From Lepidodermella squamata (lineage: Eukaryota; Animalia; Gastrotricha): a stretch of 64,000 nt of DNA. A program made the position numbers and the translations under genes. The stretch spans positions 1,488,001 to 1,552,000 of the forward strand of contig JBLDXI010000015.1 of NCBI GenBank assembly GCA_047495785.1, written 5' to 3'. The notes under the pieces are model-generated. The model saw only the letters and a program-made list of their open reading frames with translations. It was not told where the DNA came from and did not search any database. Of the stretch, positions 26,664 to 56,218 are shown in pieces. Position 1 is the stretch's first letter. The number at the start of each line of letters is the position of its first letter.

Positions 26664-26735
26664 GGGGACATAGCTCAGTGGTAGAGCGTCTCATTCGCAT
26701 TGTGAAGGTCTCGGGTTCAATCCCCGATGTCTCCA
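26664..26735 (+). tRNA. tRNA-Ala(CGC)
   Basis: Full cloverleaf with GGGGACA/TGTCTCC acceptor stem and the G3:U70 Ala identity pair. A box, TTCAATC T-loop, anticodon loop TT-CGC-AT, and a downstream oligo-T Pol III terminator. Confidence 0.95.
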
Positions 26736-32694: not shown

Positions 32695-33986
32695 TTATCC
32701 GGTTGCATTATTTGACGCATTACGCAGGATGTCGAAAAGTGTTACCAGATGGCAATATAAGCATTGCCTGTCGATGGAAGAGTTGTCAATTTTTGCCATT
32801 TTGAACGGGTGGTAAAACGCAGCCTCTGCGTCGTAAGTTTCGTGCACAGGTTTCAAACGGTTGGCGCCGTAAATTTGACCAGGATTGCGGCTTAACCACT
32901 GCAGTCGGTTAGGTTGGTCAAGCGTAACGGCTCTAATGATGCTGCCAACTGTCAACTCCATGTAAGCGCCGTGTTTCCGGAATAGCCGAAATAGCTCCGA
33001 TACCAGCAGAATGTCGGCACTAGTCACGTAAAACAAGTCCACCCACATGTTATAAATTCGTCTTTCGCCTGGTTGAGAAGAGGAAATCTTCAATGGATTC
33101 CTACTACAGTGCATTATTTCACCTTACCTTTTGTAACATTTCTCAAATTTGCATAGAATCTCGGATATTTCTGCTTAGCTTCCTCCAGGGCTGCGATGCT
33201 TTGCTTTTGATAGTCGCTCAAAAAGCTCCAGTTCTCCTTAAATCTACAGTCTATCACGTTATTTTGCGACAAACCATCGCATTTTGTCTTTTGATCAATG
33301 TCGTACAAATATTGGGCCGGCCATAGGAGCCAGTTCTTACTAAGACTGTACTGTGACTTACTGGTTAACGTCCAAAGATTCAGGATGAAATCATCTGTTA
33401 TGTGAAGAAAGCCGTCGAGTTGCCGGGATTTAACTTGTTTGGCGAGATTAGGCCTGGTCTCCAGAATGATTGGAATGCAGTCGTAGAAGAATTCACCCGT
33501 AGCATTAGGATTCGGATGACGAATCCACTCCACAAAGGTTGTGTTCACCAAATGAGAGTATCGACCGTTTTGAAATTCTTGCAGCTTATCAATCGATGCA
33601 ACACAGAAAATAATGTCGTAAAACAGGCCATGGTACAATCTGTAGGATTTAGCGATAGATTCGTAATGGGCGAGGTTCATTGAGACTATAAGTAAGACTC
33701 TACGGAAGTCTATCGTCGTTTTTGCCAAGCTATTGTCGAACCATATTGCCGGGTAATTTGTCGACAATAGAATACCTGGGCAGTGCTGTCGGAGGTTGAT
33801 AGTGCTCTCGTCTTGGAATTTATCGCAATCGGCGTCGTCCGATAGGAAAACATTTCCCGGTATTTCTCGAAAGTTTACAGTATCATTAGGAAGTTTGAAT
33901 GGCGCGAGAAAAAACGTAACTAATGCTGAGCACAAAATTAAAGCAATAAAGCGCTGCCGCAGCGTCCCAAATATTAGGCGAACCAT
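32695..33986 (-). CDS. STELLO/DUF288-like type II membrane putative glycosyltransferase, copy A; intron 33127-33069
   Basis: N-terminal TM, GFLHITDDFILNLW (DxD-like), WVDLFYV, YMELTVGSI and HPFK. These resemble motifs I recall from the STELLO C-terminal domain. Confidence 0.65.
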
Positions 33987-34240
33987 CTAAATCATACCTG
34001 TTTATGTTATTGTACCAATGCCTAAACTGAATAAGCGCACTTTTACAAAAATCAGGTGCGGCTTACATTATCCCCTTGTGCTATAAATCATCGATATTTA
34101 TCGACTCCACCGGCTTCAATATAGCCAACAGAAAATACCGTGCACTCGAATTGTTGTGAGTATTTAATCATTCATGCGCATTGACTAGGAAATATCACGG
34201 CCCGTATAAAAGTAAACGAGATTCTTTCACGGCTCCAAGG

Positions 34241-35629
34241 CTAATGAGAAGCATCACTTGCGGAATGATTTCGTAAAACATCAAACATATCAGTTAAATG
34301 GCAGTACAAGCATTGCTTGTCTATAGTTGTATCTGGCCGCTCGATATAGGCCATTTTGAAAGGATGGTAGAAAAAAGCGTCGTTAGCGTCGTAGGTCTCT
34401 TGCACCGGTTTCAATCTGTCGTTGCCATAAATTTGACCCATTCGGCCGATTTGTAATAGACTGGAGGGCGATTCTAATGTCACCGCGCGAATAATAGTAC
34501 CAACGCATAGCTCCATATAGGACCCATGCCTCGCGAATATCCTGAATAGTTCGGATACCAGTGGAACATCCCTGCTGGTTAAATAGAACAGATCCACCCA
34601 CATGTTGAAGATACGCCGTTCACCTATAAGGAAGTTGAAATGGTAACCTGGTCATCAAACCGAATTTTTTTTACCATTAGTGACGTTTGAGAGATTTCTA
34701 ATGAACTGCGGGTACTTTTCTCCAGCCTCTTCAAGAGCCTGAATGGTTGCATTTTGATAACGATGCAAGAAAGGCCACGGTTCTGGATCTGTGCAGTCTT
34801 GAGAATTGTTTCTAGATCGGCCCGTACACTTGGTCATTTGATCAATGTCGTACAAATGCTGAGCCGGGAAGAGGAGCCAGTCTTTTTGAAGACTAACTTC
34901 ATTTTTTCGTAATTTCCAGATGTTGAGTATGAAATCGTCGGTTAAATGAAGAATACCGTCGAGTTCCTGAGAATATATTTTCCTCTTGATTGCCGGAAAC
35001 TTGTCTAATACCAATGGAACGCATTTGTAGAAAAATTCACCAGTTGCATCGTCCTTGTTCGGTTCCGAGGCCCATTCGATGAAAGTATAATCGACCAATT
35101 TGAGATATCTGTACTTTTCAAACTGTCGTAGCTTATCGATAGCCGTAACGCAGAACACGATTTTGTAAAACAATCGGTAGTACATTCGATATGATTTAGC
35201 GATCGACTCGTAATGAGCTTTGTTCATAGAGATGATGAGCACAACTTTCCGGAAATCCAACACGTCTTTGAGCAGCGCTTGGTCTGTGGTGAAATGAGGG
35301 TAATTTTTGGTGATTAAAACACTCTTGCAGTTCTTCTCCAACGAATCGCGTGACGAGAATTCTTCGCAGATCGCGTCTCGAGATAGTAAAGTGGCTTCCT
35401 CGATTGGGGTGATCGAATAATCATCCGAGATCAATTTCAGCCCAGGCTCAGTAATGTTTGCCTGAGCTGAGACAGAAAACTTGTGTCCATTTGAATCGAT
35501 AATTACGGACCATTGAACTTTTTGAGTGCTGAGAACATCATAGGTGAGGGACATCATGAATAACATGAAGGTAGATAGAATGCATAGGACAAAAAAGGAA
35601 TTTCGGGTGAGTCTGTTTACGGAAGCCAT
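34241..35629 (-). CDS. STELLO/DUF288-like putative glycosyltransferase, copy B; intron 34674-34624
   Basis: Paralog with GILHLTDDFILNIW, WVDLFYL and HPFK; identical intron position. Confidence 0.65.
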
Positions 35630-35685
35630 AAATTACATGATATTAAAGGCCTAAAAATATAGAATTTATTTTTAAAATATAGCTA

Positions 35686-37115
35686 TCACCTTGTCTTTAG
35701 TTCGCGCCGAATAGTGTCGAAAGCATCAACCAAATGGCAATAAATACATTGCTTATCTATCGAAGCAACTTCAGGTTTTTCGATAAGCGCCATTTTGAAA
35801 GGATGTAAAAATACAGCACCATCTGCATCGTACATTTCGTGGAGAGGCTTTAATCGATCTCCACCAGCCAACTGACCGGATCGGCCCATCCATTGCAGGC
35901 GGGAAGAGTTATCAAGCGTGACGGCTCGAATTATTGTTCCCACTGCCAGTTCCATGTATGTCCGATGCTTCGCGAATATTGCGAACAACTCTGAAACCAG
36001 TGGTACGTCCTGGCTTGGTACATAAAACATATCGACCCACATGTTGAAAATGCGCCTCTCGCCTGAAAGTACAAAAACTCTCTTAAACGCATGGCTGAAC
36101 CGAGGTAAATAATGCCCTCACCATGCGTCACGACAGAGAGATTCTTCAAAAAATCTGGAAATTTTTTCCCGGACTCTTCGAGGCTTGAAATCATAGATTG
36201 TTGATAGCTGTGCAAGTAACTCCACGGTTCTGGTTCTTTGCAGTCTATCGCGTTGTCGGAATTTTCGCCTTTGCATTTCGTCTTTCTATCGATATCATAA
36301 ATATATTGAGCCGGCCAAAAGAGCCAGTTGGCAGATAAGCTGAACTTGTCCCTTTTCATGTTCCACATATTGAAAATAAAATCGTCTGAAATATGAAGAA
36401 AGCCGTCGAGTTCTCGAGTAGCCACCATCTTTGAAATGTTTGGGAAAGTTTTCAAAACTATTGGAAAGCAATTGTAGAAGGTTTCGCCGGTCTTATCGTC
36501 CTGATTGGGCACCGAATCCCACTCAACAAAGGAAACATTTTCCAAATGAGCGTAGCGGCCGTTGTCGAAGTTTCGCAGCCGGTCCATTGCTGTTACGCAA
36601 TAAATAATTTTGTAGAACAATTTGTGGTACAACCGGAAGGATTTCGATATCGATTCGTAATGCGGTTTGTTCATAGAAATAATCAGTAAGACTTTGCTGA
36701 AGTTGAGCATTTCTTTCACCCGTGAGCAGTCGCGCATGAAATACGGAATGTTTCTCGATATCACAATGTTTTTGCAGTGCTTTTTGATTACTTCTTGATT
36801 ACTTTCGGTCCAGGTGCTGCAATCGGAATCCGGTGAAAGGAAAGCATCTTCTCCAGAGTAAACTCTGCTTCGATTCGCTATAAAGCCATACTGACTGGCC
36901 CAAGGCGTCGAGGGCGATTGAAGTAGGCTAGTTTTTAATGGATTGCAGAGATCAACCCTCGAAGTGAAGTAGTAGTAGGACGAAATCATAGCTGCGCAAA
37001 AAACGCATAGCGCAAAAAAGAGCAGCTTTGACGGCTGAATTAGCGAGGTGGTTGCGAAGCATTTACATCTCTCCACGAGTGCATCAATTAGAGACCGAAC
37101 ATTGGTTTGAGTCAT
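35686..37115 (-). CDS. STELLO/DUF288-like putative glycosyltransferase, copy C; intron 36121-36063
   Basis: Paralog with GFLHISDDFIFNMW, WVDMFYVP, MELAVGTI and HPFK; identical intron position. Confidence 0.65.
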
Positions 37116-38248
37116 GACTTATTCAATACAGGTGGGATTTTGATCGCAATTCCCGAATTTTGGGTGCGGCAGTTTACTGAAATTTCTCCAGTATCACAGG
37201 ATTTTATCGCTTTGTGGCCACCTTATCGCTACGATGCTAATTGTATAGGTCTTGTACAAGCGCGAGGAGTGATTTAGATAAAAGTGAGCTCCATATCAAA
37301 GCTGCGCTCCGGAAAACAACACAATTTTCCCCACAAGTGGGCGCTTTACAATGGCTATTGAGTAAACTGGGTGTGGTTGACTGCTTGGTGCAGTATAGGA
37401 GAAGGGAGTGTTTTTATTTACTTTTAATCTGTTAGCGCATTCTTTATTCTGCTATGACACTCCGTGCGGTAGTTCGGCAAACGTCAGCGTTCGAGACCGG
37501 ATCTACCGAAATGGGCAAATATTGAAAGAACGATTTTGTAGCTATTGATTTCGGATTATTTCACATTTTCAATGCACTCAGGCTCCAATGATCTGATCAA
37601 CCGTACTCTCCTATTAAAGTGCCTGAATGCCGAAAGCCCACAAGATCATTTGATTATCCGGACACAGGGTTATTTTAGGATGGGCAATTTTATTAGCTTG
37701 CCAAAGTTTTGCAGGGCTGTTGTATCAGCGCTTCACCACGTCAATTGTTCTCCTCAAAGCTGTGAGACCTGCAAATTCAAGAGCTCCGACTGCTGAGTTT
37801 CCGGCCCGCGCTTCCACGCCGTCATGAATATCCGGGCTAAGCATTTCCGTTGTATAAGTGTTGACAGATCACGCTACGCCCTCCTCCCTCTCCAAAACAC
37901 TTTCGCTATTTCTTCACTTTTATTCATATTCAAACTTTCATGACAAGTTATGCATTTCTGGTTGCTCGAAATTCAAATAAAAAATTGCTGTGGCAACAAC
38001 ATCAAGATATTTACAAATGAAGATGAACACATTTCGCCCAAAGCCGAGTATTGGCCTCAGATTAGAAGCAAACGTAAGGACTTGTTGGTTATTACTGATG
38101 AGTTCCGAATGTTTGAGATCATGATGAATGTGAGAAAATAAGTATCACAGAAAAAAAATCGACTTTAATAATATTATAACTCGTTATACAGCAACTTAAA
38201 AGTAAAAGAGCAAAAATTTTTGAAATCAGCTATCGATCAACAACTATA

Positions 38249-40498
38249 TCAGCGCCTAGGGTTGAGAATTCCACGCGAAGTTGGAAAAGCAGCCGAGTCG
38301 TTGCTTTGAGCGCTGCCACGCGATGATTTCGCCGATTTTTTCGCCGAAGTCAAGTTCTGCCGCTGGCCACGACCACCCCGGCCTGGCGCGTCGATGTCAA
38401 GATCGCCTTCTTCATCGGCCAACGCTGCTTCAAGAGCAGCCTGCACCTGAGGAGCTATAACCGGGGCGTCGTAGTCGGACGTTGTTCTAGCTGGCATATC
38501 CAACTCCAACATCAAAATATTCTCGCGACGATATCGCGGGTTGGTCGAAACTGAAGCTGCAATGCGCGCGAATTCAGTAACTGGGAGTCGCTTGTTCGAA
38601 TCGGAAAAACGAGAAACGGCGGGTTTACCTCCCTCTGAGCCAGCGGGTTGAAGAACCCAGCTGTCCTCTTCCTCATTGAAAGTCGCCCGCTGTTTCAAAC
38701 GATCAATTTCCGTCGGCGGGATGAAGCTCTCCATCATCAACTGCTTCAGACGAAGTTCCCTGAGCAGCGCCTGTTGAGTTTGCTCCAACTCCTGCCGCTG
38801 TCTAGCATGTTCGCTGGCTAGATCTTGAAGTTCCTGTTTCGCAGCTTGGTGCTTCGCGAAGAGTTTTCGCAGTTTCTTGGTTTTCGACTCAACTTCTTGA
38901 GCGAGACTGGTGTAGGTTTCCTGCAGTTCTAATGCACTTTCCTCCTTTTGAAGGAGGGCTTGCTCTAACTCTCGCTCGCGTTGCTTCTGCTCTGCGATTT
39001 GGCGCTGCCTTTCGTTTAGCTCCCGCTCTTGTTGCGCAGTATGGTCGACTATATCCCGCCCTTCCCCGGCTGCTGTCCCTATCAACAATTTCGATTCCAT
39101 CGCTTTGATTTTCGCTGCTAGCTGGTTCGAGGCTTCTTGTTCCTCCTTCAATTTCCGTTTACGCTCATCAACTGCACCGAGTAACCGCTCTCGTTCACTA
39201 GCGATTAAAGAAGCGTCATTCATGATTGCAGCTTTCTCTTTCTCCAATTTAGCCTGTTGCTCTTTGGCGAATTCCTCCACGGCAGCTTCGTCATCTCCAG
39301 CCGGTCCATCATCTTCGTCGACATCTTCCATTTCACCAGTTTGAGGGTTCAACTTACGCCGTGGACCGCCGCCACCTTTCTCGGTGAGATGAGCCTTCAA
39401 ACGGGCGATCTCTTCCTGAAATTCACGCAATAAAGCGTCTTTTGGATCTTCGTTGATTTTCGGCGCGTTTTTGATCTGTTTCGCTCGACTTGCGTAACGA
39501 AGTGTTGAAAGCGTTTCTTCGTAATTGTAATTCGCAGGGCCGATATTAGCGACCATTACGGTTTTTGAGTTGCCACCGAGTGAGTCTTGAAGCAATCGGG
39601 TTAGTTTAGAATCTCGATACGGGATGTGGGTAGATTTCGCGTCAACCAAAGCACTGATAACGTTACCCAGAGCAGATAACGATAAATTGATTTTAGTAGC
39701 TTCTTTCAGACGCTCACCGGTTGCGCCGGTTTTAGCCTGGCGCTCGCTACCGGCTAAGTCGACAAGATTCAGCTTTCCAACTCTGATATGCTGCTTTCCA
39801 TCAGGTCCTTCTTCGCTGCATTCGACTGTAAGGATGAAGATGGCATGCGATCGGGAGGATTGCTCGTTCATGTTAGTTGCGCCAACTGCGCGATTCGAAT
39901 TGCCGATATTCATAACTTGGTCGAGCTCTTTTACACCTTTGGCAACAAAAGAGGATAAATCTTTTACATAGGTGCCCGTGTCTGGACGTTCCCTCAACTC
40001 CAATCGACGAGTTTGATCTCGAGCAAGTAAGTCTCGAACCTCTTCCTGGTAGATCTCCAGGTAGCTTGCCCGGACTAGATATTGCTGATTTCGAGAACCT
40101 GAAATGTGGTTGAAAATTTGTTCGAAAGAATTCGGAATGACACCTCGCTCCTCTGGCTTGTCCTTCACACCTTGCATAGTGTGGGTTTTACCGGTGCCAG
40201 TTTGACCGTAAGCGAATATGGTAGCGTTAAATCCATCAAGGCAACTTTGAACCAGGGAGCTGAATGTTTCGTCGTATAAATCGCGCTGCTTAGAGTTCCA
40301 ATCGTAAACAGCATCATATGTAAAAGTCTTCGGCATTTCGCCAGCACCAACAGCCGGATTCCTCAACTCGACCAGGCCTTTACGGGCGTCCATTTCGACA
40401 ATTCGCTCGTGACCAGCTTCGATTTCGCCTTTTGATAGTGGCCGGCATCTTACAATGACTCGCACGCACTCCGTTTTACTTGAAGCCGGCAGAGCCAT
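38249..40498 (-). CDS. KIF3B: Kinesin-2 motor subunit KIF3B-like, intronless CDS
   Basis: N-terminal motor domain ([19 protein letters not shown]), [17 protein letters not shown] neck, coiled-coil stalk, and KIF3B-type tail ([11 protein letters not shown]..., FPTSRG). Confidence 0.92.
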
Positions 40499-40606
40499 GA
40501 TTTAATAAAAACTCCCCTACAAAACAGCAAGGCATAGTTATATCAAATAGATTCAGTCCATCGCCGATAGTATGCAAAGAAATAATTGTCGCCTCAAACC
40601 TCAACA

Positions 40607-40902
40607 GGCACGGTGGCTCAGTTGGGTCGTTGAGCTGCTGTGTATCCGAGGGGATATCGCTCGGGACTGGGTTCAAGTCCTAGTGACGGAACCAGGATCG
40701 AGTCCCCCTAGGCCCCGCGGTGGTTTTACCAATCCATCGCGTTACAAAATAGAAAATTGGGAGACTGGGAGTGTCAGCTAGACTGCACCAGTCAAATCCC
40801 GTCATACGGAAATCTTACTCACTTACGATAAGACCTAGGGCTAGAGTAAGTGGCATGCTTCTAGCCCTCAAAGCTCGCTTTGAAACATAAATTATTATTA
40901 TA
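40607..40902 (+). mobile_element. tRNA-derived SINE candidate
   Basis: A box TGGCTCAGTTGG, B box GGTTCAAGTCC, 3' stem-loop agggctaga...tctagccct, and an (ATT)n tail. Confidence 0.65.
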
Positions 40903-41049
40903 AACTGTTCAGTTAAAATGAGCGATTACAAGCAATTGGGAATGTAAGAAAAGATTTCTGCTGTAGAGTGAGAAAAGAACTGACTTAGAGAAGATCTGAG
41001 TAAATATTCTCGAAAGAGCATATCAATATTCAAGCACATTGAACATTTG

Positions 41050-41345
41050 TCTCAGATTAACTTCTTTCCGTCAGGGCTACTCTAATTAGTGATTGCTTCC
41101 ATTTTCTCAGCCTGTAGCTTGTCGCAAGTGCTCCTTGTAAGTAGCGCTAAAATTAAGCAATTTGAGATTTGAGATGATGATATCACAAACGAGCTGCTGT
41201 ATTTATGATTTAGCTATTGCATAATCTCAATTCTATCAAGCCTTTTCGAGCATCCATTTCGACAATTCGCTCGCGCCCGGTTTCGATCTCGCCTTTTGAT
41301 AACGCTCGACATCTAACAACGACTCACACTCACTCTGTTACTCTA
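41050..41345 (-). pseudogene. Fragmented KIF3B duplicate
   Basis: 41336-41226 translates [35 protein letters not shown] versus [37 protein letters not shown] in KIF3B. A PDGKKLI piece near 41085-41055 resembles PDGKQHI. Confidence 0.8.
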
Positions 41346-41965
41346 ATAGCGGGTGGCGCAACGATGAAAAGACTTTATGGCTACGCTAAAATGTGAGTTT
41401 TACCAGGAACCCGATGTCTCAGACGCCAGACGAATGTGTGTGAAGCGTAAAGCTACCCCTATTTGCAGGTATTTTCGATTTTCATGGGTTGAGCGTCCGT
41501 AGCAATATCAAGGCATATGAATTTTAGAAATTCACACGATTTGTGTTATTTTGGTTGATACAGTTTCAATAAAATAATCAATGGGAATAATGGTATATGA
41601 ATTTTGAGATTTTGAAAATTCTTTTGGCGCCCAATGTTGTCCGAGCTTGATAGCGTCGTCAGCTCGCTTTAGCGTAGCAGGTGCAGGTGTGGCACCAGCA
41701 TTTGCGAATTGCATGCGTGCTTCTTCAAGACCTCGATACTCAGACGGACAACTGATTGCAGCATATGGCGTTCTGCTTTAATTGACTTGATTCGAGACAA
41801 TTTTTTAGGGTAAATATCCATCAGTGCTATCTTTACCTGGTTCCTGCGCATCCTTCATTTGATCCGTAATCATGTCTTCTCATTACCCATTACTAAGTTA
41901 TCCTCTAGTTCATCTCGTTGTCATAGTTCATATTTTTATTTAGTTGCTTTTGTGTAAGCTTTGCT

Positions 41966-43588
41966 ATGTCGGGTGGATTCGGCCTATTCGACGCCGAGTG
42001 CGCCGATGAAAGTGCCGGAACACGCCTTGGTGCGAGGTTTGGCTTGAATAGAGACCAAGCCCTGCACGAACATGAAAGATCAGGCAGAGCTGGTCACCTT
42101 CAACCTGCGACTTTTAACATGGCTCAACTGCTGAATCAGATTAATGGTGTTGAGCCAACTCAGCAAATGCATCCTCAACCGCCGTTACCTCATCGACCAC
42201 CGCAGAATGAAGCATCAAACATCGACCCGTCATCTTTGATGATGGAAGCTGCCGCTTACCCAGCTCCAACACAATTCATGCCAATGCCACATTTCATGCC
42301 ATTTGGGCAGGCTATTGATTTCCACTATGCAAATACAATGATGCCCCCCATGCCGCTGGGACCTGCTGAAGACCGGCAAGTAGCTGACGCTTGGGATGAT
42401 AGGTTAATGAGTTTGAGCTGGCACGAAGCGATAGCTAATCGAGGAGGAGATGTACCACCCCCTTCGGATTTAGCTGAAATGCCGTGGGAGGAAGTCAGAA
42501 GCGAACTCGAGAGTCATGATGCTATATCATCCGAGTTCTGGTCTGAACAGCTGAGATTTGGTGTTCAACGGCGCCAGCAACTTGAATACGAGTTCGAATT
42601 CCCAGCGCATGAAGACGAAACTATGCACGACGCCGCGTGGGCATTGGCGGAGGGCCTGAAAGCGCTAGCCGCCGGTGACGTTCCTACCGCTGTTTTTCTG
42701 CTGGAAACGTCGGTACGGGCTGATCCAACCAACGCAGAAGCCTGGTATCAACTCGGAACTGCACAGCAGCTGAATGAAAATGACAAGGCTGCTATTTCGG
42801 CTCTACAAAAATGCCTCACTCTGGACGCCAAGCACCCATTAGCTCGCATAGCCTTAGCAGCATCATTCACCAACGAACTTCGTAGAGCTGACGCGTTAAT
42901 TTCTTTGGCTGAGTGGACTGATCTGTATATTAATGATGACGATGGAGACGCTGTTCAACGAAGGCAAAGATGGGAGGCGATGGGTGATTATGGTGGTTAT
43001 ACATTCCAACAACAACTCTTCGCCGAGGCTGAGTCGCGATTACTCAAAATTCTCGAATCTAACCCTGCAGAAGATGTTGTAGCCAATGTCGAGTCAGCTC
43101 TCGGAATTCTGTATAATATTAGCGAAGATTACGAAAAGGCAGCTTCTCACTTCGAGCGTGCAATAATATGCCGGCCTGAAGATGCTGTGTTATACAATCG
43201 CTTAGGTGCAAGTTTGGCGAATGGTGATCGAAACGCAGAGGCGATCGCCGCTTATTGCCGAGCCCTTGAACTATCACCTGGGCTTCTTCGAACCCGGTAT
43301 AATCTCGGAATCGCCTCAAGCAATATGCATGCTTACAAGGAGGCTGTTCAGCACTTCCTGTCTGTTTTGAACAAGCAAAGTGACACAAGATCGGCGTTTG
43401 TTCCGATACCACCTCCAAGTAGCACTGCCTCGGGCGGTTTAACTCGATCAGGGGCATCCACTTCCGTCTGGGCGAGTCTTCGCATGGCCTTCCTAGCGAT
43501 GGATCGACGCGATTTATATGATTTAGCCCTCGATCAAAAGCTAGAAGAGTTGAATCAAGCGCTTTCTTCCATTCCGAAAGATGATTGA
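41966..43588 (+). CDS. PEX5: Peroxisomal PTS1 receptor PEX5, intronless CDS
   Basis: N-terminal Cys (DAEC) ubiquitination site, TPR domain with NENDKAAISAL, ASFTNE, LYNRLGASLANG and RYNLGI. Confidence 0.92.
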   Translation: MSGGFGLFDAECADESAGTRLGARFGLNRDQALHEHERSGRAGHLQPATFNMAQLLNQINGVEPTQQMHPQPPLPHRPPQNEASNIDPSSLMMEAAAYPAPTQFMPMPHFMPFGQAIDFHYANTMMPPMPLGPAEDRQVADAWDDRLMSLSWHEAIANRGGDVPPPSDLAEMPWEEVRSELESHDAISSEFWSEQLRFGVQRRQQLEYEFEFPAHEDETMHDAAWALAEGLKALAAGDVPTAVFLLETSVRADPTNAEAWYQLGTAQQLNENDKAAISALQKCLTLDAKHPLARIALAASFTNELRRADALISLAEWTDLYINDDDGDAVQRRQRWEAMGDYGGYTFQQQLFAEAESRLLKILESNPAEDVVANVESALGILYNISEDYEKAASHFERAIICRPEDAVLYNRLGASLANGDRNAEAIAAYCRALELSPGLLRTRYNLGIASSNMHAYKEAVQHFLSVLNKQSDTRSAFVPIPPPSSTASGGLTRSGASTSVWASLRMAFLAMDRRDLYDLALDQKLEELNQALSSIPKDD

Positions 43589-43668
43589 AAAAATATAGAT
43601 TTCTTGTTATTGATTAAATAATTTATTGATTATTTCTCTGCGTTTCTCGATAGGCTTGTTGATTTTTA

Positions 43669-46600: not shown

Positions 46601-49600
46601 GTAGCATTGTATGATTTTGAATGAAATTGAATTTTGAATTATAATTGCTATTTTTTTATTTTCAGAATTGCGCGCTGTTCATAGACCGTTTTTCGAATCT
46701 TGACGAGCAGCTTCAGTTAGTTGTTTCAGCCATCGTAGTTCAGCCATGCGAGCCGAACCCAATAATTGCGTCGCAACCCATGGCGAGAATCGTCCTCCAC
46801 TCGCCGCAACCCTCGCCACTCACCCCGAGCCACGGTATGCCCGGCGAGTACCCGCAACAATCGCCGCAACACAACACGACGCCAACTCGGGGCGGCAATG
46901 TCCTATCGCAGTCGCCTTCTGTCTGCACGGCAAATGCGACAATAATTCGAAACCCGGACTCGGTCGCGTCACTTCGGCCGCCGAAGCTTTTCTCGTTCCA
47001 GAGCCAAATTTCAGGCGATGTCGTGTACGGACTGGTTTTCCCGCCGCCTGAACACCTCGAAAAAACGAAACGGCCATCTATGCTGTACGTGTACGGCGGG
47101 CCGGGCATTCAACTGGTTAACCTCGAGTACAAAACTGGGCGGTACTTTCGGCTGGCGCTGGCGGCTTACTACGGCATTCCGGCGATTATTGTCGACTGCC
47201 GAGGCTCGGCGCGGCGGGGCCGGGTCTGGGAGAACCATATTGCGCAGAATATGGGCCAAGTTGAAGTCGCCGAGCATGTTGAAGGTAGGAATGCAACAAT
47301 TTTTTACCGTATCTTTCTGACATAGTTCAAAGCTTGATTGTAAGTGTACACGGTGTTCTTTATATTCGTGTTGGGGCCCGAGCCAGATTTCGGCCCGTAC
47401 GCGTTCGGGCCGGCCCGTACGCAGACGGGTAACAATGATTTGCCACTCCGCGCTCCGGCCGGTCTATAATGTGCCCGTATGCGACGTTCCCTGTAAATTT
47501 AACAAATTCGATAAAATCACGCTTCACCGCACACGGGCCGGGCAAGGTGTTAGCCCGAGCACGGCGGAGAACAATGGGATAACAATGAGAGAACAATATT
47601 ATTAAGAAAATTGGATTGATTAATTTCAAGTTTCCAATTCAGCAGTGTCCGCAGTGATATTTCTGAAATTCAAGTCTCTTAAAAGTTATGCGTACAAGAA
47701 ATGGATGAAAAATTAAGTATAACAGTTCACTTCAATTTTAATTGGTATCGGAAATTAATAATTCAGATCATGATTAATTAGAAAATATCACGTTGAATTA
47801 GAACAGACCATGAAGTTTAAAGTCAGCACGATTCAGCTGCGACATTAAGCGGATAGTTTTTCATTAACTAAAATTTGTTGGGCTTTGCAAATGATGGAAG
47901 AGCCATCCCGACCAGGAAGTCGTTTGAGAAACCTAGGATCCCCGCCTTAGTAGGTAGCGTTTTACGGATAGGCGAGTTAAACTTTTTCTGCAGTTTTGCA
48001 AGCGTTACGTTGACTTTCGAGATACATAATGACTATTTTACCCCGAATATTTAACACGCGGCATTGAATGTCAGAGTTCGAGTTTAATTATTGGGCAAGG
48101 TCGATATTCAACGTCCACGATAGCCAGATTGTCTACGTCAACCACGTGTCGTCTGGTTAAGTCCAAGACGAAAATAGCTCATCCATTATTTTTTCTTTGA
48201 CCTTGGACACCCGGTATTTTTGCAATTTCCACATCAGGCGAACGTAGATGATGAAATCGGCTATTAAATACTTGAAAGAAGACTGTAATTTGTGGCGAAC
48301 CGTGATTGGGCGAATGTCGAGGGGCTTATATTTCGTTAACTACGGCATTTTACACTTCTTTCTTGATGAAATGCGGAAAAGATGTAAAACATTTGAATTC
48401 GAAGCCTTCATTTGCAATCGCAATGAGATTTTTGAAATACGTGCAAGAAGCATACCTGGGCAACAACTCCGGCGAAAAATGTGAGCAATAAATTTATCTG
48501 CTTTCGGTCCTTGTTAAAAAGAAATACCTCATGGCTGTGTAGCTCTCTGAACTTCTCGAAGCCGAAACGGACGAGTTTATCGGTTTCTCTCCGATAAGAA
48601 AAGAGCACTCTCGGCCGTATTGCCGTTTTCGGCTATGTTAAAGCAAAATATCCAGGCCCATTTGAGCCGAACGTAGAATCATCAGCTTGGGCTTTTCATT
48701 TTTTATTCAATATTACAGTGAAAGTTGTTTAATAGTTAAATAGTTGTTTTATAATTTTATTGTGTAAACCGGACTCTCTAAACCGGACTGGTGTATAAAC
48801 CGGACGGATTTGGGGCTCGAAGTCCGGTTTATGCAATAAAAAGTCCAATTTTCTATATAATTTTGAAGAAAGTGCCAGGCCCTGCCTGACAAGAGTAGCC
48901 TCAAAATTTCGAAAAAAAATTCAACTTCCAAATTATTGCGAATATAGCTGAATATAGCTGAATATGTTTATTATTTATATTAAAATTGTCGATTCCGTAA
49001 TAAAAAACTATTACTTAGCTTCTAAAACTTGAAAATTCCATGAATTTCACGTGGTATGTCCTATACCGGACTCAGTCCGGTTTAAAATAATTCGGACTTT
49101 CTCTAAACCGGACGATTTTGCCTGGCACGACCTTAGTCCGGTTTAGACAACTTTCACTGTATATGATTTGCTCGTTATCTACGAATAGTAGAAGAAATGA
49201 ACATAATTAATTCATGCACGAACTTCGTGGGTCAAGGTGTAAAATAACAAAAAATATTGAACATGTTAACCATTTTTCAGGACTCGACGCCGCAGCTGAG
49301 CGATTCCCATTTATCGACCGCGAACGAGTCGCAATCCACGGCTGGTCCTACGGCGGTTATTTGTCGCTAATGGCCCTCGCCCAGCGGCCTGACCGCTTCA
49401 AAATGGCCATTTCCGGCGCCCCAGCCACCGACTGGCGCCTGTATGACACAGCCTGGACCGAACGCTACATGGGCATGCCGCCCAACGGCGCCCACTCGCC
49501 GCCCAGCGCCATTTCAGCGTACCACGTCGGCTCAGTGCTATCACTGGCGCACCGCTTCCCGGACGACCCGGACCGGCTGTGGCTGGTTCACGGGCTGCTC

Positions 49601-49771
49601 GATGAAAACGTGCATTTCGCGCACACCGCCGCCCTCCTCGACGCGTTGAACCGAGCCGGCAAGCCGTATCGGCTGTACGCGTACCCTAATGAACTGCACG
49701 GGCTGCGGCAGCCGGAAAACTACGCCCACTGCTGTGCCCTGCTGCTCTACGCCCTTCTCAACTACTTGTGA
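43669..49771 (+). CDS. DPP9: Dipeptidyl peptidase 8/9 (S9B); exons ~43669-43808, 43858-44375, 44490-44892, 45105-45709, 46666-47284, 49281-49771
   Basis: REEQLLRERQRI, SYIIQEEFDRY, YVYGGPGIQLV, catalytic GWSYGG, LDENVHF and HGLR; no signal peptide or TM. Confidence 0.92.
48716..49159. mobile_element. Tc1/mariner (pogo-like) MITE in a DPP9 intron
   Basis: TA|CAGTGAAAGTTGT...ACAACTTTCACTG|TA with subterminal taaaccggac repeats. Confidence 0.8.
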
Positions 49772-50229
49772 TCAAATGCAACATTTGTTCGATAGACGAA
49801 GCCAATTAAATGAATAGTGACAATTTTAGTTATTATTATTATTATTATTGAAAATTATTGATTAATAACTGTGTATTATACATACTTAGCTCAAGTTTGC
49901 GTTTATTGTAATCGGCGTTTTTTGTTTCATCTTTCTTTCGTTTTTACTGTTGCTGATAGGCTGATAATAAGTTAAACTGGACAAGTTTTAGCCGCTGTTT
50001 TCTTGCTGCAATGATGACCAGTATTCTCGCTGCAATTATTATTGTTTCATTTTTCTTCCTGTTTATCGTTCCGTATATATAAAATAATGGTAATGTTGCG
50101 TTGTTAAGGTGCAATTGAATTTCTGATAGAAAAAATTACATGCAATCAATTAAAAAATCAAAAAATTCGGCTTGCGATTTTACGTCATGGCTTTTGTTTA
50201 TTCTGAATTTTAGGCAGTTGGGCTTGATT

Positions 50230-53200
50230 ATGTTGAATTTGTTTCGAAGAATCCCGAGAGCGACGCGGTTGGTGGCCTTGAGTACTCAGGCGAATGCGGC
50301 TCCAGCTGCTGCTGCAGCGCAACCTGCCCAGCAGCCGCCTATTGCCTTCAGAACATCTCTGTCGAATCCGGTATATATGATTTTTCAAGTTTGGAAAAGG
50401 AAAAGTACCAGTAAAATGCTGGGGTAGCTCATCATTCTCATTAATACCTCAAAGATCGAAGAAGAGGATTATATCGATTTCAAAAACCCATGGCTATCGA
50501 GAAATTCGATCTGAGCAAATTCGGAAAAATCTAAAATTATTAGTTCGATTAAAAGCATGGAATTAAGTAAAAATTCCTCATGGATTCGAGGGGGGCGGGT
50601 TTTTTACTTAGAAAAATTGAAAAATGAGTTCAAAATTTGAGCTGGAAATTTAGTTCTTAAGAGCGTTTCAACAGTTAACAGGAATCGAAATTTTGACATT
50701 GATTGGAAATAAGCGAGAGTATTTCTTGATTCGTATTATTTTACAGAGTGATCACAATTTGGAACACGAAGGCCTGTACTATTCGATACCAGACGCTCAC
50801 CTCGGCGCTTTGTTCAGCATGCCAACTGGCAAAGAAAGCGGCATTGCGGCTGCGGTTCGTGAGCAGTGGAAAACCTTCGGCGAGGCGTGTCTTATGGTTC
50901 GCCGGCCGGCGCTTCAAGTTGTCGATTACCTCAAAACCACCGACTGGACCCAGCCGCCTAATTGCTTCATGTTCTGTAAGTTTTATGCGATCCGCGCGGC
51001 TAAATTCATTTGCCAAGCGAAAAATAGCATTCATTTTACAAAAATTGTGAAAATATAAAGTTTGATTTTTAACTTGGTTTTCGAGAGTTCAAGCGAAAAA
51101 TTGACGCGTATAAGCAAATTCGACAACGTTTTAACACTCGCGGGTGTCATCTTCAAGTTTCATATCAAGTATAAATTATTTGAGTCGAGAATGAAGAAAG
51201 TTGATGGTCCAGTTGTTCGGAAAACCTTCCGACAATTAAGGCCAATTTTTGGCAAAAAGTCGGTAAAATGTTTACAAAAACACGTCATTTTATTTATTTA
51301 ACAACAGAGAAATGTTTCAAGCTATTTATAGTGTAGAATAATGTCATAAATTCCATGGAAACTGCGGGGGCTAATACTAGCGCGCCACACGCCAGTACTC
51401 GTCGTAGCGAGACTTTAACTTTCGCTTCAGGACCAATCCAATTTGACGAGGCTGATCGCCGGTCTATGCCGGTCACAAAGATATCAGACTTTGATGCCAT
51501 CCATCAAAATCGAAATTAAACAGGAATAATCAGAAAATCAAAATCACGGTGTAAAAAAATTTCGGATTAGACATGATTAGACAAGATCTGACATGACGAG
51601 GCTGATCGCCGGTCTATGCCGGTCACAAAGATATCAGACTTAGATGCCATCCATCAAAATCGAATTGGATCGCCCGAGGCAGGTCGATTGTTGATGATGC
51701 GCACGTGGTCATGAAGAAGTTGAGCGGTTTGCAAAAGCCGGCGGCGACCTTGTCGGCGGTAGCCAGCGCAGTGCCGCGGCAGTCGACGATAGGCCGGATC
51801 TTCAACAGGCCGTCGGTGTCGTTGGGCGTGTGGACCTTGGGGAGGAAATAGATGTGGCGCACTCGGGTTGGCACTAGGTCGAGGTCGCGTAGCAGCTTGC
51901 GTTGCGCTGCCGTGCCGGACTTCTTGACCAGTTCGACCAGCGCTGTCATCGCGTCCAGTCCGGCCGCTTCTTCCTGTTCTTCGGCGACGACGTAGTTGGC
52001 GGTTGAGAGGTGCTTCAGCGCCATCTTTCGATAGTCTGGCTTCGGCATGAACACGAGGGCTGCGCCTTTGTCCGGATAGTCCAGTTGTTCGGAAAATCTC
52101 AAGGTTCGGAAAACCTTCCGACAATTGAGGCCAATTTTCGGCAAAAAGTTGGAAGATGAAATTTATTCATAAAAACACGTCATTTTATTTATTTAACAAC
52201 AGAGAAATGTTTCAAGCTATTTATAATGTATAATAATGTCATAAATTTCATGGAAACTGCGGGGGGCTAATACTAGCGCGCCACACGCCAGTACTCGTCG
52301 AGACTTTAACTCAAGCCGTAATAGTAGTGGTCAGCGCCTGCGCGCAGGGCAATAAATCCGATTTTGCGGCATTTAGTATCCCCCGGGCACCCCCACCAGC
52401 CGTCAGGTTGCAGGATATAAATCACCTTGTACTTGTTCATCATGGCGAAATCCTGACAGTCTCGCCACCGACCCAATTTTTGTCTGCCCGATTTCTTTAG
52501 CTGTTAATACTTTCTTTTATCAATCATAAAGTTGAATGGTAGCTATACTTACCATATTCCAGTTGTTGCATGCCTGTCCGAATGCGCTGTCTCTATATTA
52601 GGCAGCAAATTGGCTGAAATATATAGAGTTTTCCAGGACTTGGAAAAGCGAGAAGCTCCAAGCTGTGGATGTTTTTATAGTTGTCGAAAGCACTAGCTGC
52701 GCCTTATGGACATTTGAAAACAACGTGTTTGCCATCGATAGCTCCAACGCAATTCGGAAAATTTCACTGTTCCCAGAACACGCCTACGATGTGACGCCAG
52801 GTGCAGTGGTTCATTAGCTTAAATGAACCCTAGCATTACCTGATGAATTTTTTGCTCTGGCCTGCAGGCTTGGAGGCAAAATTTTCAGTTGGGCCTTCCC
52901 GAACAACACTTCGGCGGAGTCTTCCTCGTCGTACATGTTTATTAATTTCGATGTAAATGGCGACAATTCGGCGTTTCCGTGACTGGTCGTTCGTATACTA
53001 GAGATTGACGGCCGATTCCCAGTCACTCGGCTTTAGCTACTTGGTTGGGTTTTGCGGGCGTTAGGCTAGGTGTAGTTTTGACGTTTTCAGCAGTGGGTGA
53101 AAAGACATCATCTTCAAATTCAGCCTGAGTTGAATCAGTTTCGAACCCTTCGGCAGAATATGAAACCTGTGGCTCGTCGAAGTTGACTTGAACCTCAGTC

Positions 53201-56200
53201 TTGTCCTGATTTTCCTCAAGAATCGCATTTCGCCTGCATGAACTCGAGCGCAGTTGTAGCCCGAGCCCAATTGGGCTTTTTTCCTACAATTTTCGCTGTA
53301 GTATTTGCGCTTTTTGCCTCAACGATTTTTCACAACCGCTTCCAGGCAACCGAGTAAAGCACCTATTTCGACCCCGGTCTCACTTTGCAAATCAGTTGAA
53401 GCTGTGGAGATCGGTACTGCGGCGACGGGCGGCTCACCTATATTTATATTGCCTTTCTTCGCTTTACTGGTTTTACGCTTGACTGGTCTAGAAGATGCCT
53501 TGACATGCTTATCGGCGACAGCATGTTCGATAGTAGCGTGGGGAAGACGATTAGAATCGATTAATTTTTCAGTTCGTCCTCGTTCACTTGAGTTGATTTC
53601 GGCCGGTTTATTAGTAACATAAACTTGAAAAAATGAGTAAATTTAAAATACTCATCCCCGAACAAAAAAAGAAATATTAAGTGATAGCATCCGTATGAAC
53701 CTAGAATAAGAAATTACGATTTCCAAAACGTTGAATTATCCAATATCACCAATGTCATATCAATTTAATCTTTCTTAGATGGCCCAGAAGGCTCTGGAAA
53801 GCAGATGTCAATGGCCCACGTGCTACACCACGGTTTGATCCAGAAAATGCTCATCGTCCACATTCCTTTCGGTAATTTCAATAAATCCACCTTGAATTTT
53901 TTTGCATTGCAATTTTTCTCTCAAGTTCGAGCTTGGATTAGCCCGTTGTACACTGGCGTGAAAATGCATTCTTCATGGAAAGAACACCGAGTCGACCTAG
54001 CCTCTGAGGGCGTCAACGTGCTAACGCGATTTAAGCAGCAAAACGCGGGATTCCTCGCTGAACACAAGCCGAAAATTGAAAATACATACAAATGGACGCA
54101 GCGTGAAGACGCGCCGGCCGGCACAACCTTCACCGACCTCATCGATTTCGGCATTCGCCGGTCGAAATTTTCGTGCGATGTAGTCGGCGCGTTGCTCAAA
54201 GAAATCAAACTTCAAAGCGCGAAAAATAACTGGAAAGTTCTAGTCCTAGCCGGTGCTGTCAACTCAGCCTGGGAACAGCCTGGTTTTTTGATGGACCGGA
54301 AACCAGTTCAGGCTGAAAATATCAGTTTAATTCATCATTTGAAGAAGTTACTGCGGCGAGATTGGACGAATGCGGTTTTCGTGACGTCTGTCTGCCCGCG
54401 GGGTACGGTTGATGTGACAAAGCGCGTGTCTCACATGCCGAAATATTTGCTGTCCGATGCGGGTTTCGAGCACATGGACCCGTTTGTTCCGGTTCTTGTG
54501 CCGAATTATTCTGAGAAGGAGGCGATTTCAGCTGTCAATTACTACATCGATCAGCGATGGATTCTTCGACCCAACGGTAATTAGAAAATTTCAGAAAACC
54601 CGTGGTTGCTATCTGAGTAATCTAATTCAGGGAAAAAGGATCGAAATTTACAAAAATTTTAGCAAACAATGTCAAGAAATCTTATTTTTGGCGATGTGAA
54701 ATTTTTTGGGTCGTTATATTGGTACATCAATTCTCCTACAGCGTCTGAGAGATGTTAATCTCTATAGTGTTACGGCATGAGTAATATCCTCATCGCGTCA
54801 TCATCCCAACCACCCGACCCTATGGGGTCCAATCTCCATTTCGTGTCGACTTGACTGCGACAATGTTTCAATTAGAGTCAACCTATCGCTCTGCTGAGAT
54901 GCCATCAGTTTTAGATCGCTCGTCAAATCTGTTGCACCTACAGTGCCAATAAAAAGTCTTGTCAAGCCGAAACATTTTAAGCAACCGGGCTTAAAGCAAT
55001 TTGAAATTGTTGCCCTTTTTCATTCTCGCGAGTAAAAATAAGATTTACGCCATTCAAAATTATTAGCAAAAAAACAATGGTGGGTTCAGCGTGTTAGGGT
55101 AAGGTAACCTAATTCTGCATAAAAAATTTCCACTTTTTTCAAACGCCTGGCATTCCATAACCATGAGGTTCTCCGGGCTCAAATTTTGACCATAAATAGT
55201 CAGAACCCATTCCAGTGAGCTCACAAAATTTCAAAGTCAATTCCTCACCGTTAGGGATTAGGGAGCCACCGTTGCTGAAAGTCAAAAAAGGCAAAAATTT
55301 AAATTCGCCCGAGGGTGCCAAAAATCTGCATAAAAGCTTCACTTCTGAACTGCTGCTGTTTATATATGTAAAAATCGGCGCGATTTTTACATTTGTGTAT
55401 AACCCTGGTCTCTTCAGGGTACTTCGTATCGTTTAAACTGTTTGGGGGTTTCCTTGAATTGTCACCTTGAATTGACGAAGAATTGTCGCTAGTTTTGGAA
55501 CGATATGAAGTTTTATTAAGCAATCAGGAATGTAAAATGTAACTCGAAAAGAATTGTAAGTCGAGTTTAATCGCTTTTCCGAAGAAGATGAGGGTTGTTG
55601 ATGATTTGAGAGGCTTCGTCTCGAAGGCGATTTACTCATCCCTGGCGAGTACTTCGTGAATAGTAAGCAGTGGCTCAGTCGTGAATTCACCTCTGCAATA
55701 AGTTGATTAAAAGGAAAAGCCGGAATTGCCGCCTCCTCGAACATGGTTAAACCGAAGCCGTCATCAAGAATCGCTTCTGTATCAATAAGACGAACAGGGG
55801 CTATCGGATTTTCAGTCACTGAAGTCATCTCAGGAGTGACAATGACCACCGGCATTGCCGTTTAGTGGAGGTCTCGGATAACTTGAGACCCCTGAGTAGT
55901 TGCGATCTTGGAGACGACGATTTTTTGGAAGTTTGCGCCAGCATTTTGAGCCTTAAGTATTGCAAGTTGAGATCAATGGCAAATTTACGAGGATACGAGG
56001 ATCATTATAAATGGATGACCAGAATACATATCAAAATATTGAGTGCGAGAATGTTGGCTCAAATTTTTACTTTTACTCCGGTTTCCCGGTTATTTTGCTG
56101 ATTATTTACTTATGTTCTGTTTATTTTTGTAGCTCGGACTGATAACGGGAAACGAGAGCTGATCAGCCTTAGCTGTCACAATCCAGCCGAGCTGAACCGC

Positions 56201-56218
56201 CTAGCGTCGGTGCTGTGA
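50230..56218 (+). CDS. DAP3: Mitochondrial small ribosomal protein mS29/DAP3; exons 50230-50370, 50746-50975, 53779-53871, 53926-54577, 56133-56218
   Basis: Mitochondrial-transit-like N-terminus, FRTS..NP.DH..EHEGLYY, TFGEACLMVRRPAL, P-loop GPEGSGK, GFEHMDPFVPV.VPNYSEKE and ELISLSCHNP. Confidence 0.92.
51208..52311 (-). mobile_element. Penelope-like RT fragment (51665-52080) flanked by ~210-bp direct repeats, in DAP3 intron 2
   Basis: DKG...YFLPKVH...IRPIV motifs typical of the Penelope RT N-terminus. Direct repeats 51208-51421/52080-52311 and 51446-51514/51595-51664. Confidence 0.75.
52560..53345 (-). mobile_element. Decayed PIF/Harbinger transposon (MADF-BESS ORF plus DDE transposase pieces)
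   Basis: FWEQ*NFPNCVGAIDGKHV (Harbinger transposase) at ~52785-52725; VKNR*GKKRKYY...GSG...EMRFL (MADF end); DEEDSAEVLFGK..LK.LP..LQARAK (BESS-like). Confidence 0.75.

Follow-up and report, generated by a model that had tools for sequence, protein, structure and literature searches.

The locus studied here raises the question of how a gene whose start codon lies only a few tens of nucleotides behind the stop codon of its same-strand neighbour comes to be expressed. In the window, by which we mean the whole 64,000-nucleotide stretch of DNA that was analysed, this situation occurs twice, as 80 nt separate the stop codon of PEX5 from the ATG of DPP9 and 56 nt separate the stop codon of a STELLO-like copy (C) from the ATG of the next (B). 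Each of these gaps holds a poly(A) hexamer and then an AG, the layout to be expected of an operon resolved by spliced-leader (SL) trans-splicing, and neither DPP9 nor STELLO-like B has room for an intergenic promoter of its own. We tentatively propose, with confidence that stops somewhat short of even, that PEX5-DPP9 and C-B are operon pairs that leave scarcely any spacer between their cistrons, as the operons of tunicates and chaetognaths do. The downstream gene (DPP9 or B) would be co-transcribed with its upstream neighbour (PEX5 or C), the upstream mRNA would be cut and polyadenylated in the gap after ATTAAA (PEX5) or AATAAA (C), and a spliced leader joined at the AG 15–21 nt before the downstream ATG would supply the new 5′ end. 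That the genes are co-transcribed, that splicing takes place at these AGs and that a spliced leader exists at all are points that we infer from sequence alone.

The first-pass annotation had described the region as two divergent operon-like clusters, PEX5-DPP9-DAP3 and KIF3B followed by three STELLO genes. On rechecking, its open reading frame ends, hexamers, AGs and gaps were all correctly placed, and Pfam and homology searches bore out the identities of KIF3B, PEX5, the DPP8/9-type peptidase and DAP3 (Table 1). The kinesin gene is, judged by its motor domain (Pfam Kinesin PF00225, E = 1e-122) and by best full-length orthologue matches to KIF3B or the kinesin-II 95 kDa subunit (59–64% identity over 98–99% of the length), a KIF3B-subunit gene. 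PEX5 carries TPR domains in Pfam and its named matches are peroxisomal targeting signal 1 receptors, DPP9 carries the DPPIV_N and Peptidase_S9 domains, and DAP3 matches the Pfam family of that name (E = 1.5e-25). The STELLO assignment fared less well, as copies C and A match PF03385 with 20.3 and 21.2 bits (E of about 1e-4 for both; 1.4e-4 for A), below the gathering score of 27.8 bits, and the exon-1 reading frame of copy B had no PF03385 match in the Pfam search. Membership of the family was therefore not borne out, and "STELLO-like" is used here as a lead. The region is compact, with housekeeping genes packed closely together, and belongs to a fast-evolving bilaterian that has no annotated relative; the branch length of KIF3B is about four times the median. 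Most animal lineages with SL trans-splicing likewise pair fast evolution with a compact genome.

Table 1. Genes and intergenic regions of the locus, in window coordinates (minus-strand exons are listed in the direction of transcription).
Feature	Position	Strand	Details
STELLO-like glycosyltransferase copy A	32695..33986	-	exons 33986-33128, 33068-32695; 410 aa; intact spliced CDS
STELLO-like copy B	34241..35629	-	exons 35629-34675, 34623-34241; 445 aa; intact CDS
C-B intergenic gap	35630..35685	-	56 nt; between C stop and B ATG
STELLO-like copy C	35686..37115	-	exons 37115-36122, 36062-35686; 456 aa
KIF3B-type kinesin-II motor subunit	38249..40498	-	single exon, 749 aa
Divergent KIF3B/PEX5 intergenic region	40499..41965	.	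1467 nt
PEX5 (PTS1 receptor)	41966..43588	+	single exon, 540 aa; TGA 43586-43588
PEX5-DPP9 gap	43589..43668	+	80 nt; ATTAAA 43613-43618
DPP8/9-type dipeptidyl peptidase (DPP9)	43669..49771	+	6 exons, 924 aa
DPP9 exons	43669-43808, 43858-44375, 44490-44892, 45106-45709, 46666-47284, 49281-49771	+	without internal stops; all introns GT-AG
DPP9-DAP3 intergenic region	49772..50229	+	458 nt; ATTAAA about 37 nt past DPP9 stop
DAP3 (mitoribosomal protein mS29)	50230..56218	+	5 exons, 399 aa
DAP3 exons	50230-50370, 50747-50975, 53779-53871, 53926-54576, 56133-56218	+	without internal stops

Where operonic spacing is taken as tens of nucleotides to about 250 nt, the PEX5-DPP9 and C-B gaps fall within the range and the 254 nt between B and A are borderline, while the distances from DPP9 to DAP3 (458 nt) and from KIF3B to C (1133 nt) lie outside it. 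The cluster reading thus holds for the two short gaps and not for the clusters as a whole; a three- or four-gene operon is unsupported because of the spacing, and the plausible operon candidate is limited to two gene pairs. KIF3B is probably transcribed separately from C, and DPP9 separately from DAP3; any linkage within either pair would be loose. The divergent region between KIF3B and PEX5 is presumed to house the promoters of both genes. The same region contains a degenerate copy of the 5′ coding end of KIF3B (41226–41339) and tRNA-type A- and B-box-like motifs at approximately 40590–40720.

The scoring matrix for acceptor-like sites was derived from 19 local introns, whose own scores run from 1.8 to 14.8. 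At the C-B junction, the C stop (35688–35686) is followed by AATAAA (35670–35665), a TTTTTAG ending at 35651 and the B ATG at 35629; the site, TATATTTTTAG/GC (the slash follows the AG, here 35652–35651), lies 21 nt before the ATG and scores 10.3, among the higher values seen in real introns. An N-terminal hydrophobic anchor in copy B, the downstream member of this pair, supports its ATG. At the PEX5-DPP9 junction the corresponding sequence is TTTCTCGATAG/GC, with its AG at 43652–43653, 15 nt before the DPP9 ATG at 43669, and its score of −1.2, at the site that matters most for the conserved pair, is lower than that of all 19 real local acceptors. The hexamer precedes the AG by 13 nt in the C-B gap and by 34 nt in the PEX5-DPP9 gap; in this non-coding DNA a canonical poly(A) hexamer arises by chance with a probability of about 0.07 per 35-nt stretch (AATAAA, C-B) and 0.12 per 60-nt stretch (ATTAAA, PEX5-DPP9). 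The AGs reported before PEX5 (TTTTTATTTAG/T, 41942–41943), DAP3 (GAATTTTAG/GC, 50212–50213) and KIF3B (CTGTTTTGTAG/G, 40518–40517) are present 22, 16 and 18 nt before the respective ATGs, with scores of 11.7, 9.5 and 5.9, and they may be outron acceptors, acceptors of 5′UTR introns or chance occurrences. In copy A, a TTTAG/GC precedes the ATG by 35 nt, with another TTTAG abutting it, and no good acceptor-like site precedes the ATG of copy C (score −0.8).

The one known relative, a species represented solely by metagenome contigs, has the same genes in the same order and on the same strands, KIF3B(−)/PEX5(+)-DPP9(+)-DAP3(+), with protein identity to the window of about 65% for PEX5 and of 78% for the DAP3 exon compared; its DPP9 also matches Dpp_8_9_N, and the N-termini of the two DPP9 proteins align. 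Both the order PEX5-DPP9-DAP3 and the tight spacing of its first pair are conserved, the PEX5-DPP9 gap being 85 nt in the relative against 80 nt in the window. In the window, introns and other spacers have grown several-fold, and the size of this one gap was kept; between KIF3B and PEX5 there are 1467 nt against 659 nt in the relative, and between DPP9 and DAP3 458 nt against 311 nt. Apart from composition, the sequence of the PEX5-DPP9 gap shows no conservation (z = −0.3). The gap of the relative contains CTCATATAG/G (ATAG/G) 28 nt before the DPP9 ATG, with an acceptor score of 3.2, and no canonical poly(A) hexamer. Microsynteny with the relative extends to a gene beyond DAP3 and thereby exceeds the putative operon, so the conserved order is not specific evidence for an operon; the STELLO-like cluster is absent at the locus of the relative. 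That PEX5-DPP9 is a conserved operon served by a novel spliced leader, in a lineage without an annotated genome or described operons, is a stronger proposition to which we give a low probability.

Among the other explanations, the one that survives best, though we regard it as rather unlikely, holds that these are independent monocistronic genes with core promoters of their own, either in the gap or within the 3′ end of the preceding gene, and with very short 5′UTRs, in which case the T-rich stretches ending in TAG(GC) 15–35 nt before the ATGs would be promoter or initiator elements or mere chance. Acceptor-like sites within 45 nt before 11 tested ATGs were enriched relative to random non-coding windows (P about 0.004–0.006), and against dinucleotide-shuffled versions of these upstream regions, which are rich in T, the combined P was 0.039 (0.41 for the relative alone), in a test that is biased towards a positive outcome because the genes were picked after the motifs had been noticed. 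Unselected ORF starts elsewhere gave mixed results, and splice-site-like signals before ATGs exceed chance only weakly. The 60-nt upstream regions consist of 42–53% T, and their shuffles often yield equally good "acceptors", which is consistent with independent genes, as is the sub-threshold score of the DPP9 site in window and relative alike (P = 0.63 in the former and 0.58 in the latter against shuffles). All candidate sites are TAG and four of six read TAG/GC, whereas four of 12 real acceptors in the window are TAG and two of 12 are followed by GC, suggesting that the candidates are a different kind of signal; compaction without operons is moreover documented in Dimorphilus (PMC7854359). 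Against independent promoters stands the arithmetic of the gaps, since a 3′UTR, a poly(A) site, a promoter and a 5′UTR within 56–80 nt would be extreme for an animal, as well as the very good match of the STELLO-like B site to the acceptor matrix and the retention of an 80–85 nt gap in two species despite turnover of its sequence.

It is more doubtful still that the AGs serve cis-splicing of 5′UTR introns, or that the pairs are read as dicistronic mRNAs with re-initiation, in either case without a spliced leader; with cis-splicing, non-coding first exons would lie upstream, and DPP9 and B would share theirs with the upstream gene or have it inside that gene. Dicistronic genes are known in insects. 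The donors that such splicing would use can be found upstream of some sites: a strong one at 50090 (score 8.6) could pair with the DAP3 AG as a 124-nt 5′UTR intron, and donors at 41393, 41469 and 41810 (6.0–8.4, like real donors) precede the PEX5 AG. Three of the five acceptors that the first-pass annotation had called unpaired could pair with upstream cis donors. Since good donors precede the PEX5 and DAP3 sites, the description can be upheld for DPP9 and STELLO-like B alone. Those donors prove nothing in turn, as donors of real-like quality are expected by chance about once per 480 nt. Within the tight gaps, GT...AG intervals as long as typical introns (48 and 50 nt) fit between PEX5 and DPP9 in the two species, but their donors are weak (1.2 for the window, where the sole donor-like GT lies at 43606, and 1.8 for the relative); the 56-nt C-B gap contains no GT anywhere, and if the exon-1 donor of C were spliced to the B acceptor, translation would end at a stop two codons on. 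That the tightness of C-B is a leftover of duplication breakpoints, with copy B silent or decaying, is very improbable: C, B and A are tandem paralogues whose duplication boundaries would have set the initial spacing, but B retains an intact 445-aa frame with its conserved motifs across two exons, shares its intron position with C and A, is 51–57% identical to them in amino acid sequence with saturated synonymous sites, and in a silent copy this old stops would have built up.

Because so old a paralogue has kept its frame intact, copy B must be expressed despite its 56-nt spacer, which speaks for the operon reading. The Rfam search of the 64-kb window returned no SL RNA gene, whether the gathering threshold or E <= 5 was the cut-off; as such genes are usually sited in other parts of a genome, this result is uninformative.

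Among animals, the distribution of SL trans-splicing and operons is patchy, and it is unsettled whether they had one origin or many. If the operon reading is true, an operon conserved in two species of an unsampled, fast-evolving lineage would be a data point on these origins and a further case of SL trans-splicing with operons in Metazoa, either independent or very old; if the lineage turned out to be nematode, flatworm, tunicate or chaetognath, the finding would be routine. Once confirmed, the operons would offer two short, well-defined junctions for experimental work. Either way, DPP9 and STELLO-like B may be fused or mis-started by automatic annotation unless the tight junctions are recognised.

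Compared with known systems, the locus resembles the compact genome of Dimorphilus gyrociliatus in its short introns, short intergenic regions and head-to-head and head-to-tail housekeeping genes. Unlike in that compact genome, which has neither SL trans-splicing nor operons and uses canonical promoters according to ATAC-seq and 5′UTR analysis (PMC7854359), the stop-to-ATG distances of 56–80 nt leave no room for a canonical promoter. Rotifers, copepods, amphipods, ctenophores and some sponges possess SL trans-splicing without described operons (PMC7986045); plain SL addition of this kind would fit the AGs near the ATGs of the solitary KIF3B, PEX5 and DAP3 genes, whereas two very tight pairs would exceed what is described for those groups, and no close match was found among annotated rotifer, copepod and ctenophore proteins.

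The nematode operons of the C. elegans type, resolved by SL2, likewise show the order of AAUAAA, U-rich spacer and 3′ splice site, along with introns of about 50 nt and U-rich acceptors as seen here. Nematode operons are enriched in housekeeping and mitochondrial genes. The spacers of the present locus are shorter than the nematode distance of about 100 nt between poly(A) site and acceptor, its candidate acceptors are UAG rather than UUUCAG, the Rfam SL1 and SL2 models have no match in the window, and named nematode PEX5 proteins are 33–36% identical to that of the window against 39–42% for those of arthropods. Operons resolved by SL2-type leaders are widespread in nematodes (PMC7668243).

In layout, the pairs come close to the operons of tunicates (Ciona, Oikopleura) and chaetognaths (Spadella, Paraspadella), which are resolved by a single spliced leader; no tunicate sequence is among the best KIF3B or PEX5 matches. 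In those operons the upstream poly(A) signal lies almost on the downstream acceptor, with 3 nt from poly(A) site to acceptor in Spadella (PMC2481426), and here the hexamer and the AG are 13 nt (C-B) and 34 nt (PEX5-DPP9) apart. Published operons have comparable spacing: the cut-off applied was 60 bp in Oikopleura, 84 bp in Ciona (PMC7986045) and less than 250 bp in the chaetognath P. gotoi, whose operons take in 18% of its genes and whose genome shows rampant tandem duplication (PMC12460157). As in these animals, the pairs described here consist of same-strand housekeeping genes that lie tens of nucleotides apart.

The window is eukaryotic, with a G+C content of ~43%, large open exons and introns that are often near 50 nt in length. 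The names given to KIF3B, PEX5, DPP9 and DAP3 in the first-pass annotation are supported by domain and homology evidence, the best named matches of KIF3B being KIF3B or kinesin-II 95 kDa proteins at 59–64% identity, and the DPP9 and DAP3 models are intact, with introns that are GT-AG throughout. The name STELLO holds less firmly, as the three tandem copies display a weak family resemblance and the PF03385 matches found in two of them fall below the gathering score.

Genes and other sequence elements of the window
Feature	Position	Strand	Description
Inverted repeat	14513-16181 / 16780-18469		1.7-kb arms, 87% identity, ~600 nt between arms; internal sub-repeats of 365 nt
tRNA-Ala(CGC) gene	26663-26736	+	Sole Rfam match in the window reaching the family gathering score
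STELLO-like C, B, A	downstream of KIF3B	-	Tandem two-exon paralogues of 456, 445 and 410 aa
KIF3B	38249-40498	-	Single-exon ORF, 749 aa; kinesin motor domain, E = 1e-122
Stretch with tRNA-type promoter motifs	about 40590-40720		KIF3B-PEX5 spacer; TGGCTCAGTTGG ... GGTTCAAGTCC
Degenerate KIF3B 5' copy	41226-41339, reaching ~41365	-	First ~38 codons; 81% DNA identity to 40362-40475
PEX5	41966-43588	+	540-aa ORF, PEX5-type TPR receptor
DPP9	after PEX5	+	DPP8/9-type peptidase; DPPIV_N and Peptidase_S9 domains; 6 exons, 924 aa
Box C/D snoRNA-like element	44928-45033	+	106 nt, DPP9 intron 3
DAP3/mS29	after DPP9	+	5 exons, 399 aa
Direct repeats	51215-51420 and 52104-52311		~206 nt, 90% identity, DAP3 intron 2
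Repeat-flanked ORF	51623-52144	-	173 aa, DAP3 intron 2

Renewed inspection of stops, start codons, hexamers and AGs returned every position in the first-pass annotation unchanged. From the end of the PEX5 TGA (43588) to the DPP9 ATG (43669) there are 80 nt, which hold ATTAAA at 43613 and an AG at 43652–43653; the 56 nt between the TGA of copy C (35688–35686) and the ATG of copy B (35629) hold AATAAA at 35670–35665 and TTTTTAG ending at 35651. A canonical poly(A) hexamer is expected by chance in ~7% of non-coding stretches of 35 nt and ~12% of those of 60 nt, and its presence in both tight gaps is mildly informative. The AG precedes the ATG by 22 nt in PEX5, 16 nt in DAP3 and 18 nt in KIF3B. 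The wider spacings (1133 nt from KIF3B to C, 458 nt from DPP9 to DAP3 and 254 nt from B to A) lend no support to the broader proposal of two operon-like clusters, one of three genes and one of four, all resolved through a spliced leader.

For the PEX5-DPP9 and C-B pairs, junctions of operons resolved by a spliced leader (SL) would be the most economical reading of the sequence, and we advance it tentatively. Both genes of a pair would be transcribed together, the upstream mRNA undergoing 3'-end processing and the downstream mRNA trans-splicing. Rfam detected no SL RNA in the window, whether the gathering score or an E-value cut-off was applied.

The candidate trans-splice acceptors were scored with acceptor and donor weight matrices derived from 19 homology-supported introns, 12 from the window and seven from a second species, the sole close relative found, which was recovered through PEX5, KIF3B and DAP3-exon homology searches as four ENA metagenome contigs (L001–L004). 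Real acceptors score 1.8 to 14.8 (leave-one-out), and the best sites within 45 nt before the ATG reach 11.7 for PEX5, 10.3 for STELLO-like B, 9.5 for DAP3, 6.0 for A, 5.9 for KIF3B, −0.8 for C and −1.2 for DPP9, with 2.8 to 7.5 for the four orthologous genes of the relative. Such sites are enriched before ATGs versus random non-coding 45-nt windows (binomial P ~0.004–0.006 at several thresholds), in a test that is biased because its genes had been picked after the motifs were noticed. The 60 nt before the tested ATGs contain 42–53% T, and against dinucleotide shuffles of the same upstream stretches the combined P is 0.039 (window 0.021, relative 0.41), the DPP9 site not exceeding its own shuffles. 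Elsewhere, in both the window and the relative, the scores of ORF starts were mixed.

An alternative, which we consider unlikely but the most serious of those weighed, is that each downstream gene is driven by an independent promoter within the upstream gene and has a very short 5'UTR; in that case the T-rich ...TAG(GC) motif would be promoter-related or a chance occurrence. TTAGGC coincides with the candidate acceptors of STELLO-like A (34020–34025, minus strand), B (35649–35654, minus strand) and DAP3 (50210–50215, plus strand), DPP9 having ATAGGC; ~0.06 copies are expected in the 7 × 45 nt before the ATGs, for a pattern that was spotted post hoc. It could represent splice-site context or a promoter element. 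TTAGGC shows no general enrichment across the window, with 26 copies versus 28 expected.

The relative exhibits the same arrangement, KIF3B(−)|PEX5(+)-DPP9(+)-DAP3(+), at identities to the window of ~61–65% for PEX5, 78% for the DAP3 exon and ~87–91% for the KIF3B motor. Since synteny reaches one gene past DAP3, this conserved order is not operon-specific. The PEX5-DPP9 gap of the relative is 85 nt long and carries CTCATATAG|G at a distance of 28 nt ahead of the ATG; a canonical poly(A) hexamer was not found in it, and an anchored alignment of the two gaps revealed no conservation beyond composition (z = −0.3). Introns at the locus measure up to 956–2803 nt in the window versus tens to ~230 nt in the relative; the divergent spacer between KIF3B and PEX5 is 1467 nt long in the former and 659 nt in the latter. 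That the 80-nt gap was not expanded while the window grew elsewhere fits constraint on the gap, but so short a gap is also a small target for insertion.

The STELLO-like cluster is not present at the corresponding locus of the relative, where an intronless Glyco_transf_15 gene (PF01793; L001 3919–5010, plus strand) lies beside animal genes. This family is best known from fungi, and horizontal transfer is possible. KIF3B, intronless in the window, is interrupted in the relative by a ~56-nt intron (L001 about 8720–8775), DPP9 intron 1 (43809–43857) is confined to the window, and several donors in the KIF3B and DPP9 comparison are of an unusual GTT type (GTTTGT, GTTGTA, GTTGGT). The contigs with the next-best PEX5 matches (L005 and L006) have no synteny with the window locus, and no further relatives were found in JGI metagenome contigs.

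Several other elements lie near these genes. The snoRNA-like element (ATGATGA at the 5' end, internal TGATGA and 3' CTGA) is conserved in both species (L001 about 12770–12885) amid an otherwise unalignable intron, including an identical block of 18 nt, AAAAATCTTCTCGCTGAT, that runs up to and across the D box, and has no Rfam family match; its clear conservation indicates that functional non-coding sequence is detectable at this divergence. The degenerate KIF3B copy, on the same strand and ~740–870 nt upstream of the real gene, carries ATC in place of ATG and two in-frame stops, and is thus a pseudo-exon that a local duplication left in the divergent promoter region. A tRNA-derived SINE may underlie the tRNA-type internal promoter motifs between KIF3B and PEX5; the stretch was not called by ARAGORN or Rfam and has no second copy in the window. 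The repeat-flanked ORF, with no Pfam match, may belong to a small mobile element that helped to expand DAP3 intron 2 to 2803 nt.

Cis-spliced 5'UTR introns or true dicistronic mRNAs would account for the same junctions, and we judge this improbable. The acceptors had been described as unpaired, which stands for the C-B gap, where the donor scan found no GT dinucleotide, and for the PEX5-DPP9 gap, with one weak donor only. It does not stand for DAP3 and PEX5, for which ordinary 5'UTR introns are possible given donors that match real ones in quality upstream of their AGs (50090 for DAP3; 41393, 41469 and 41810 for PEX5); as such donors arise by chance at ~1 per 480 nt, their presence is no proof either way.

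That copy B is a silent or dead duplicate is highly improbable, its intact reading frame counting against it. The three STELLO-like copies display 51–57% protein identity, saturated synonymous sites, one common intron position and an N-terminal hydrophobic anchor in each, and from the intact frame and this old divergence it would follow that copy B must be expressed. With only 56 nt between it and the C stop, it must be transcribed from a start site within or upstream of C, and no other single argument speaks as strongly for co-transcription or an embedded promoter. The acceptor-like site of copy B also ranks among the closest matches to real introns.

The KIF3B and PEX5 proteins of the window have no exact match on record. 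After the relative, the next matches reach at most 44% for PEX5 and 64% for KIF3B and span many phyla (word-indexed searches, and exhaustive HMMER for PEX5). The top KIF3B matches are molluscs, annelids, hemichordates and sharks (~60–64%), and the window branch in the KIF3B tree, ~4× the median length, falls without resolution near lophotrochozoans. The four top named matches in the exhaustive PEX5 search are all arthropods (mite, copepod, ostracod and tick, ~40% each), and DAP3 matches birds and oyster at 32–38%. Annotated nematode, rotifer, tardigrade, flatworm, tunicate or ctenophore proteins do not stand out among the matches. Judged by these comparisons, the lineage evolves fast and is almost without representation in annotated databases; it may belong to a group for which no genome annotation has been deposited, such as chaetognaths, early-branching nematodes, gastrotrichs or many of the flatworms. 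Literature searches brought up no relevant work on SL in tardigrades or gastrotrichs.

Nematodes, flatworms, tunicates and chaetognaths are well known to have operons resolved by SL trans-splicing. An operon at this locus, if real, would be a further case of this known type, and would stand out only in a lineage for which no operons have been described. SL trans-splicing without described operons occurs in rotifers, copepods, amphipods, ctenophores and sponges (PMC7986045). In tunicate and chaetognath operons the poly(A) site and the acceptor almost coincide (PMC7986045, PMC12460157, PMC2481426), and it is this type that the proposed junctions would resemble.
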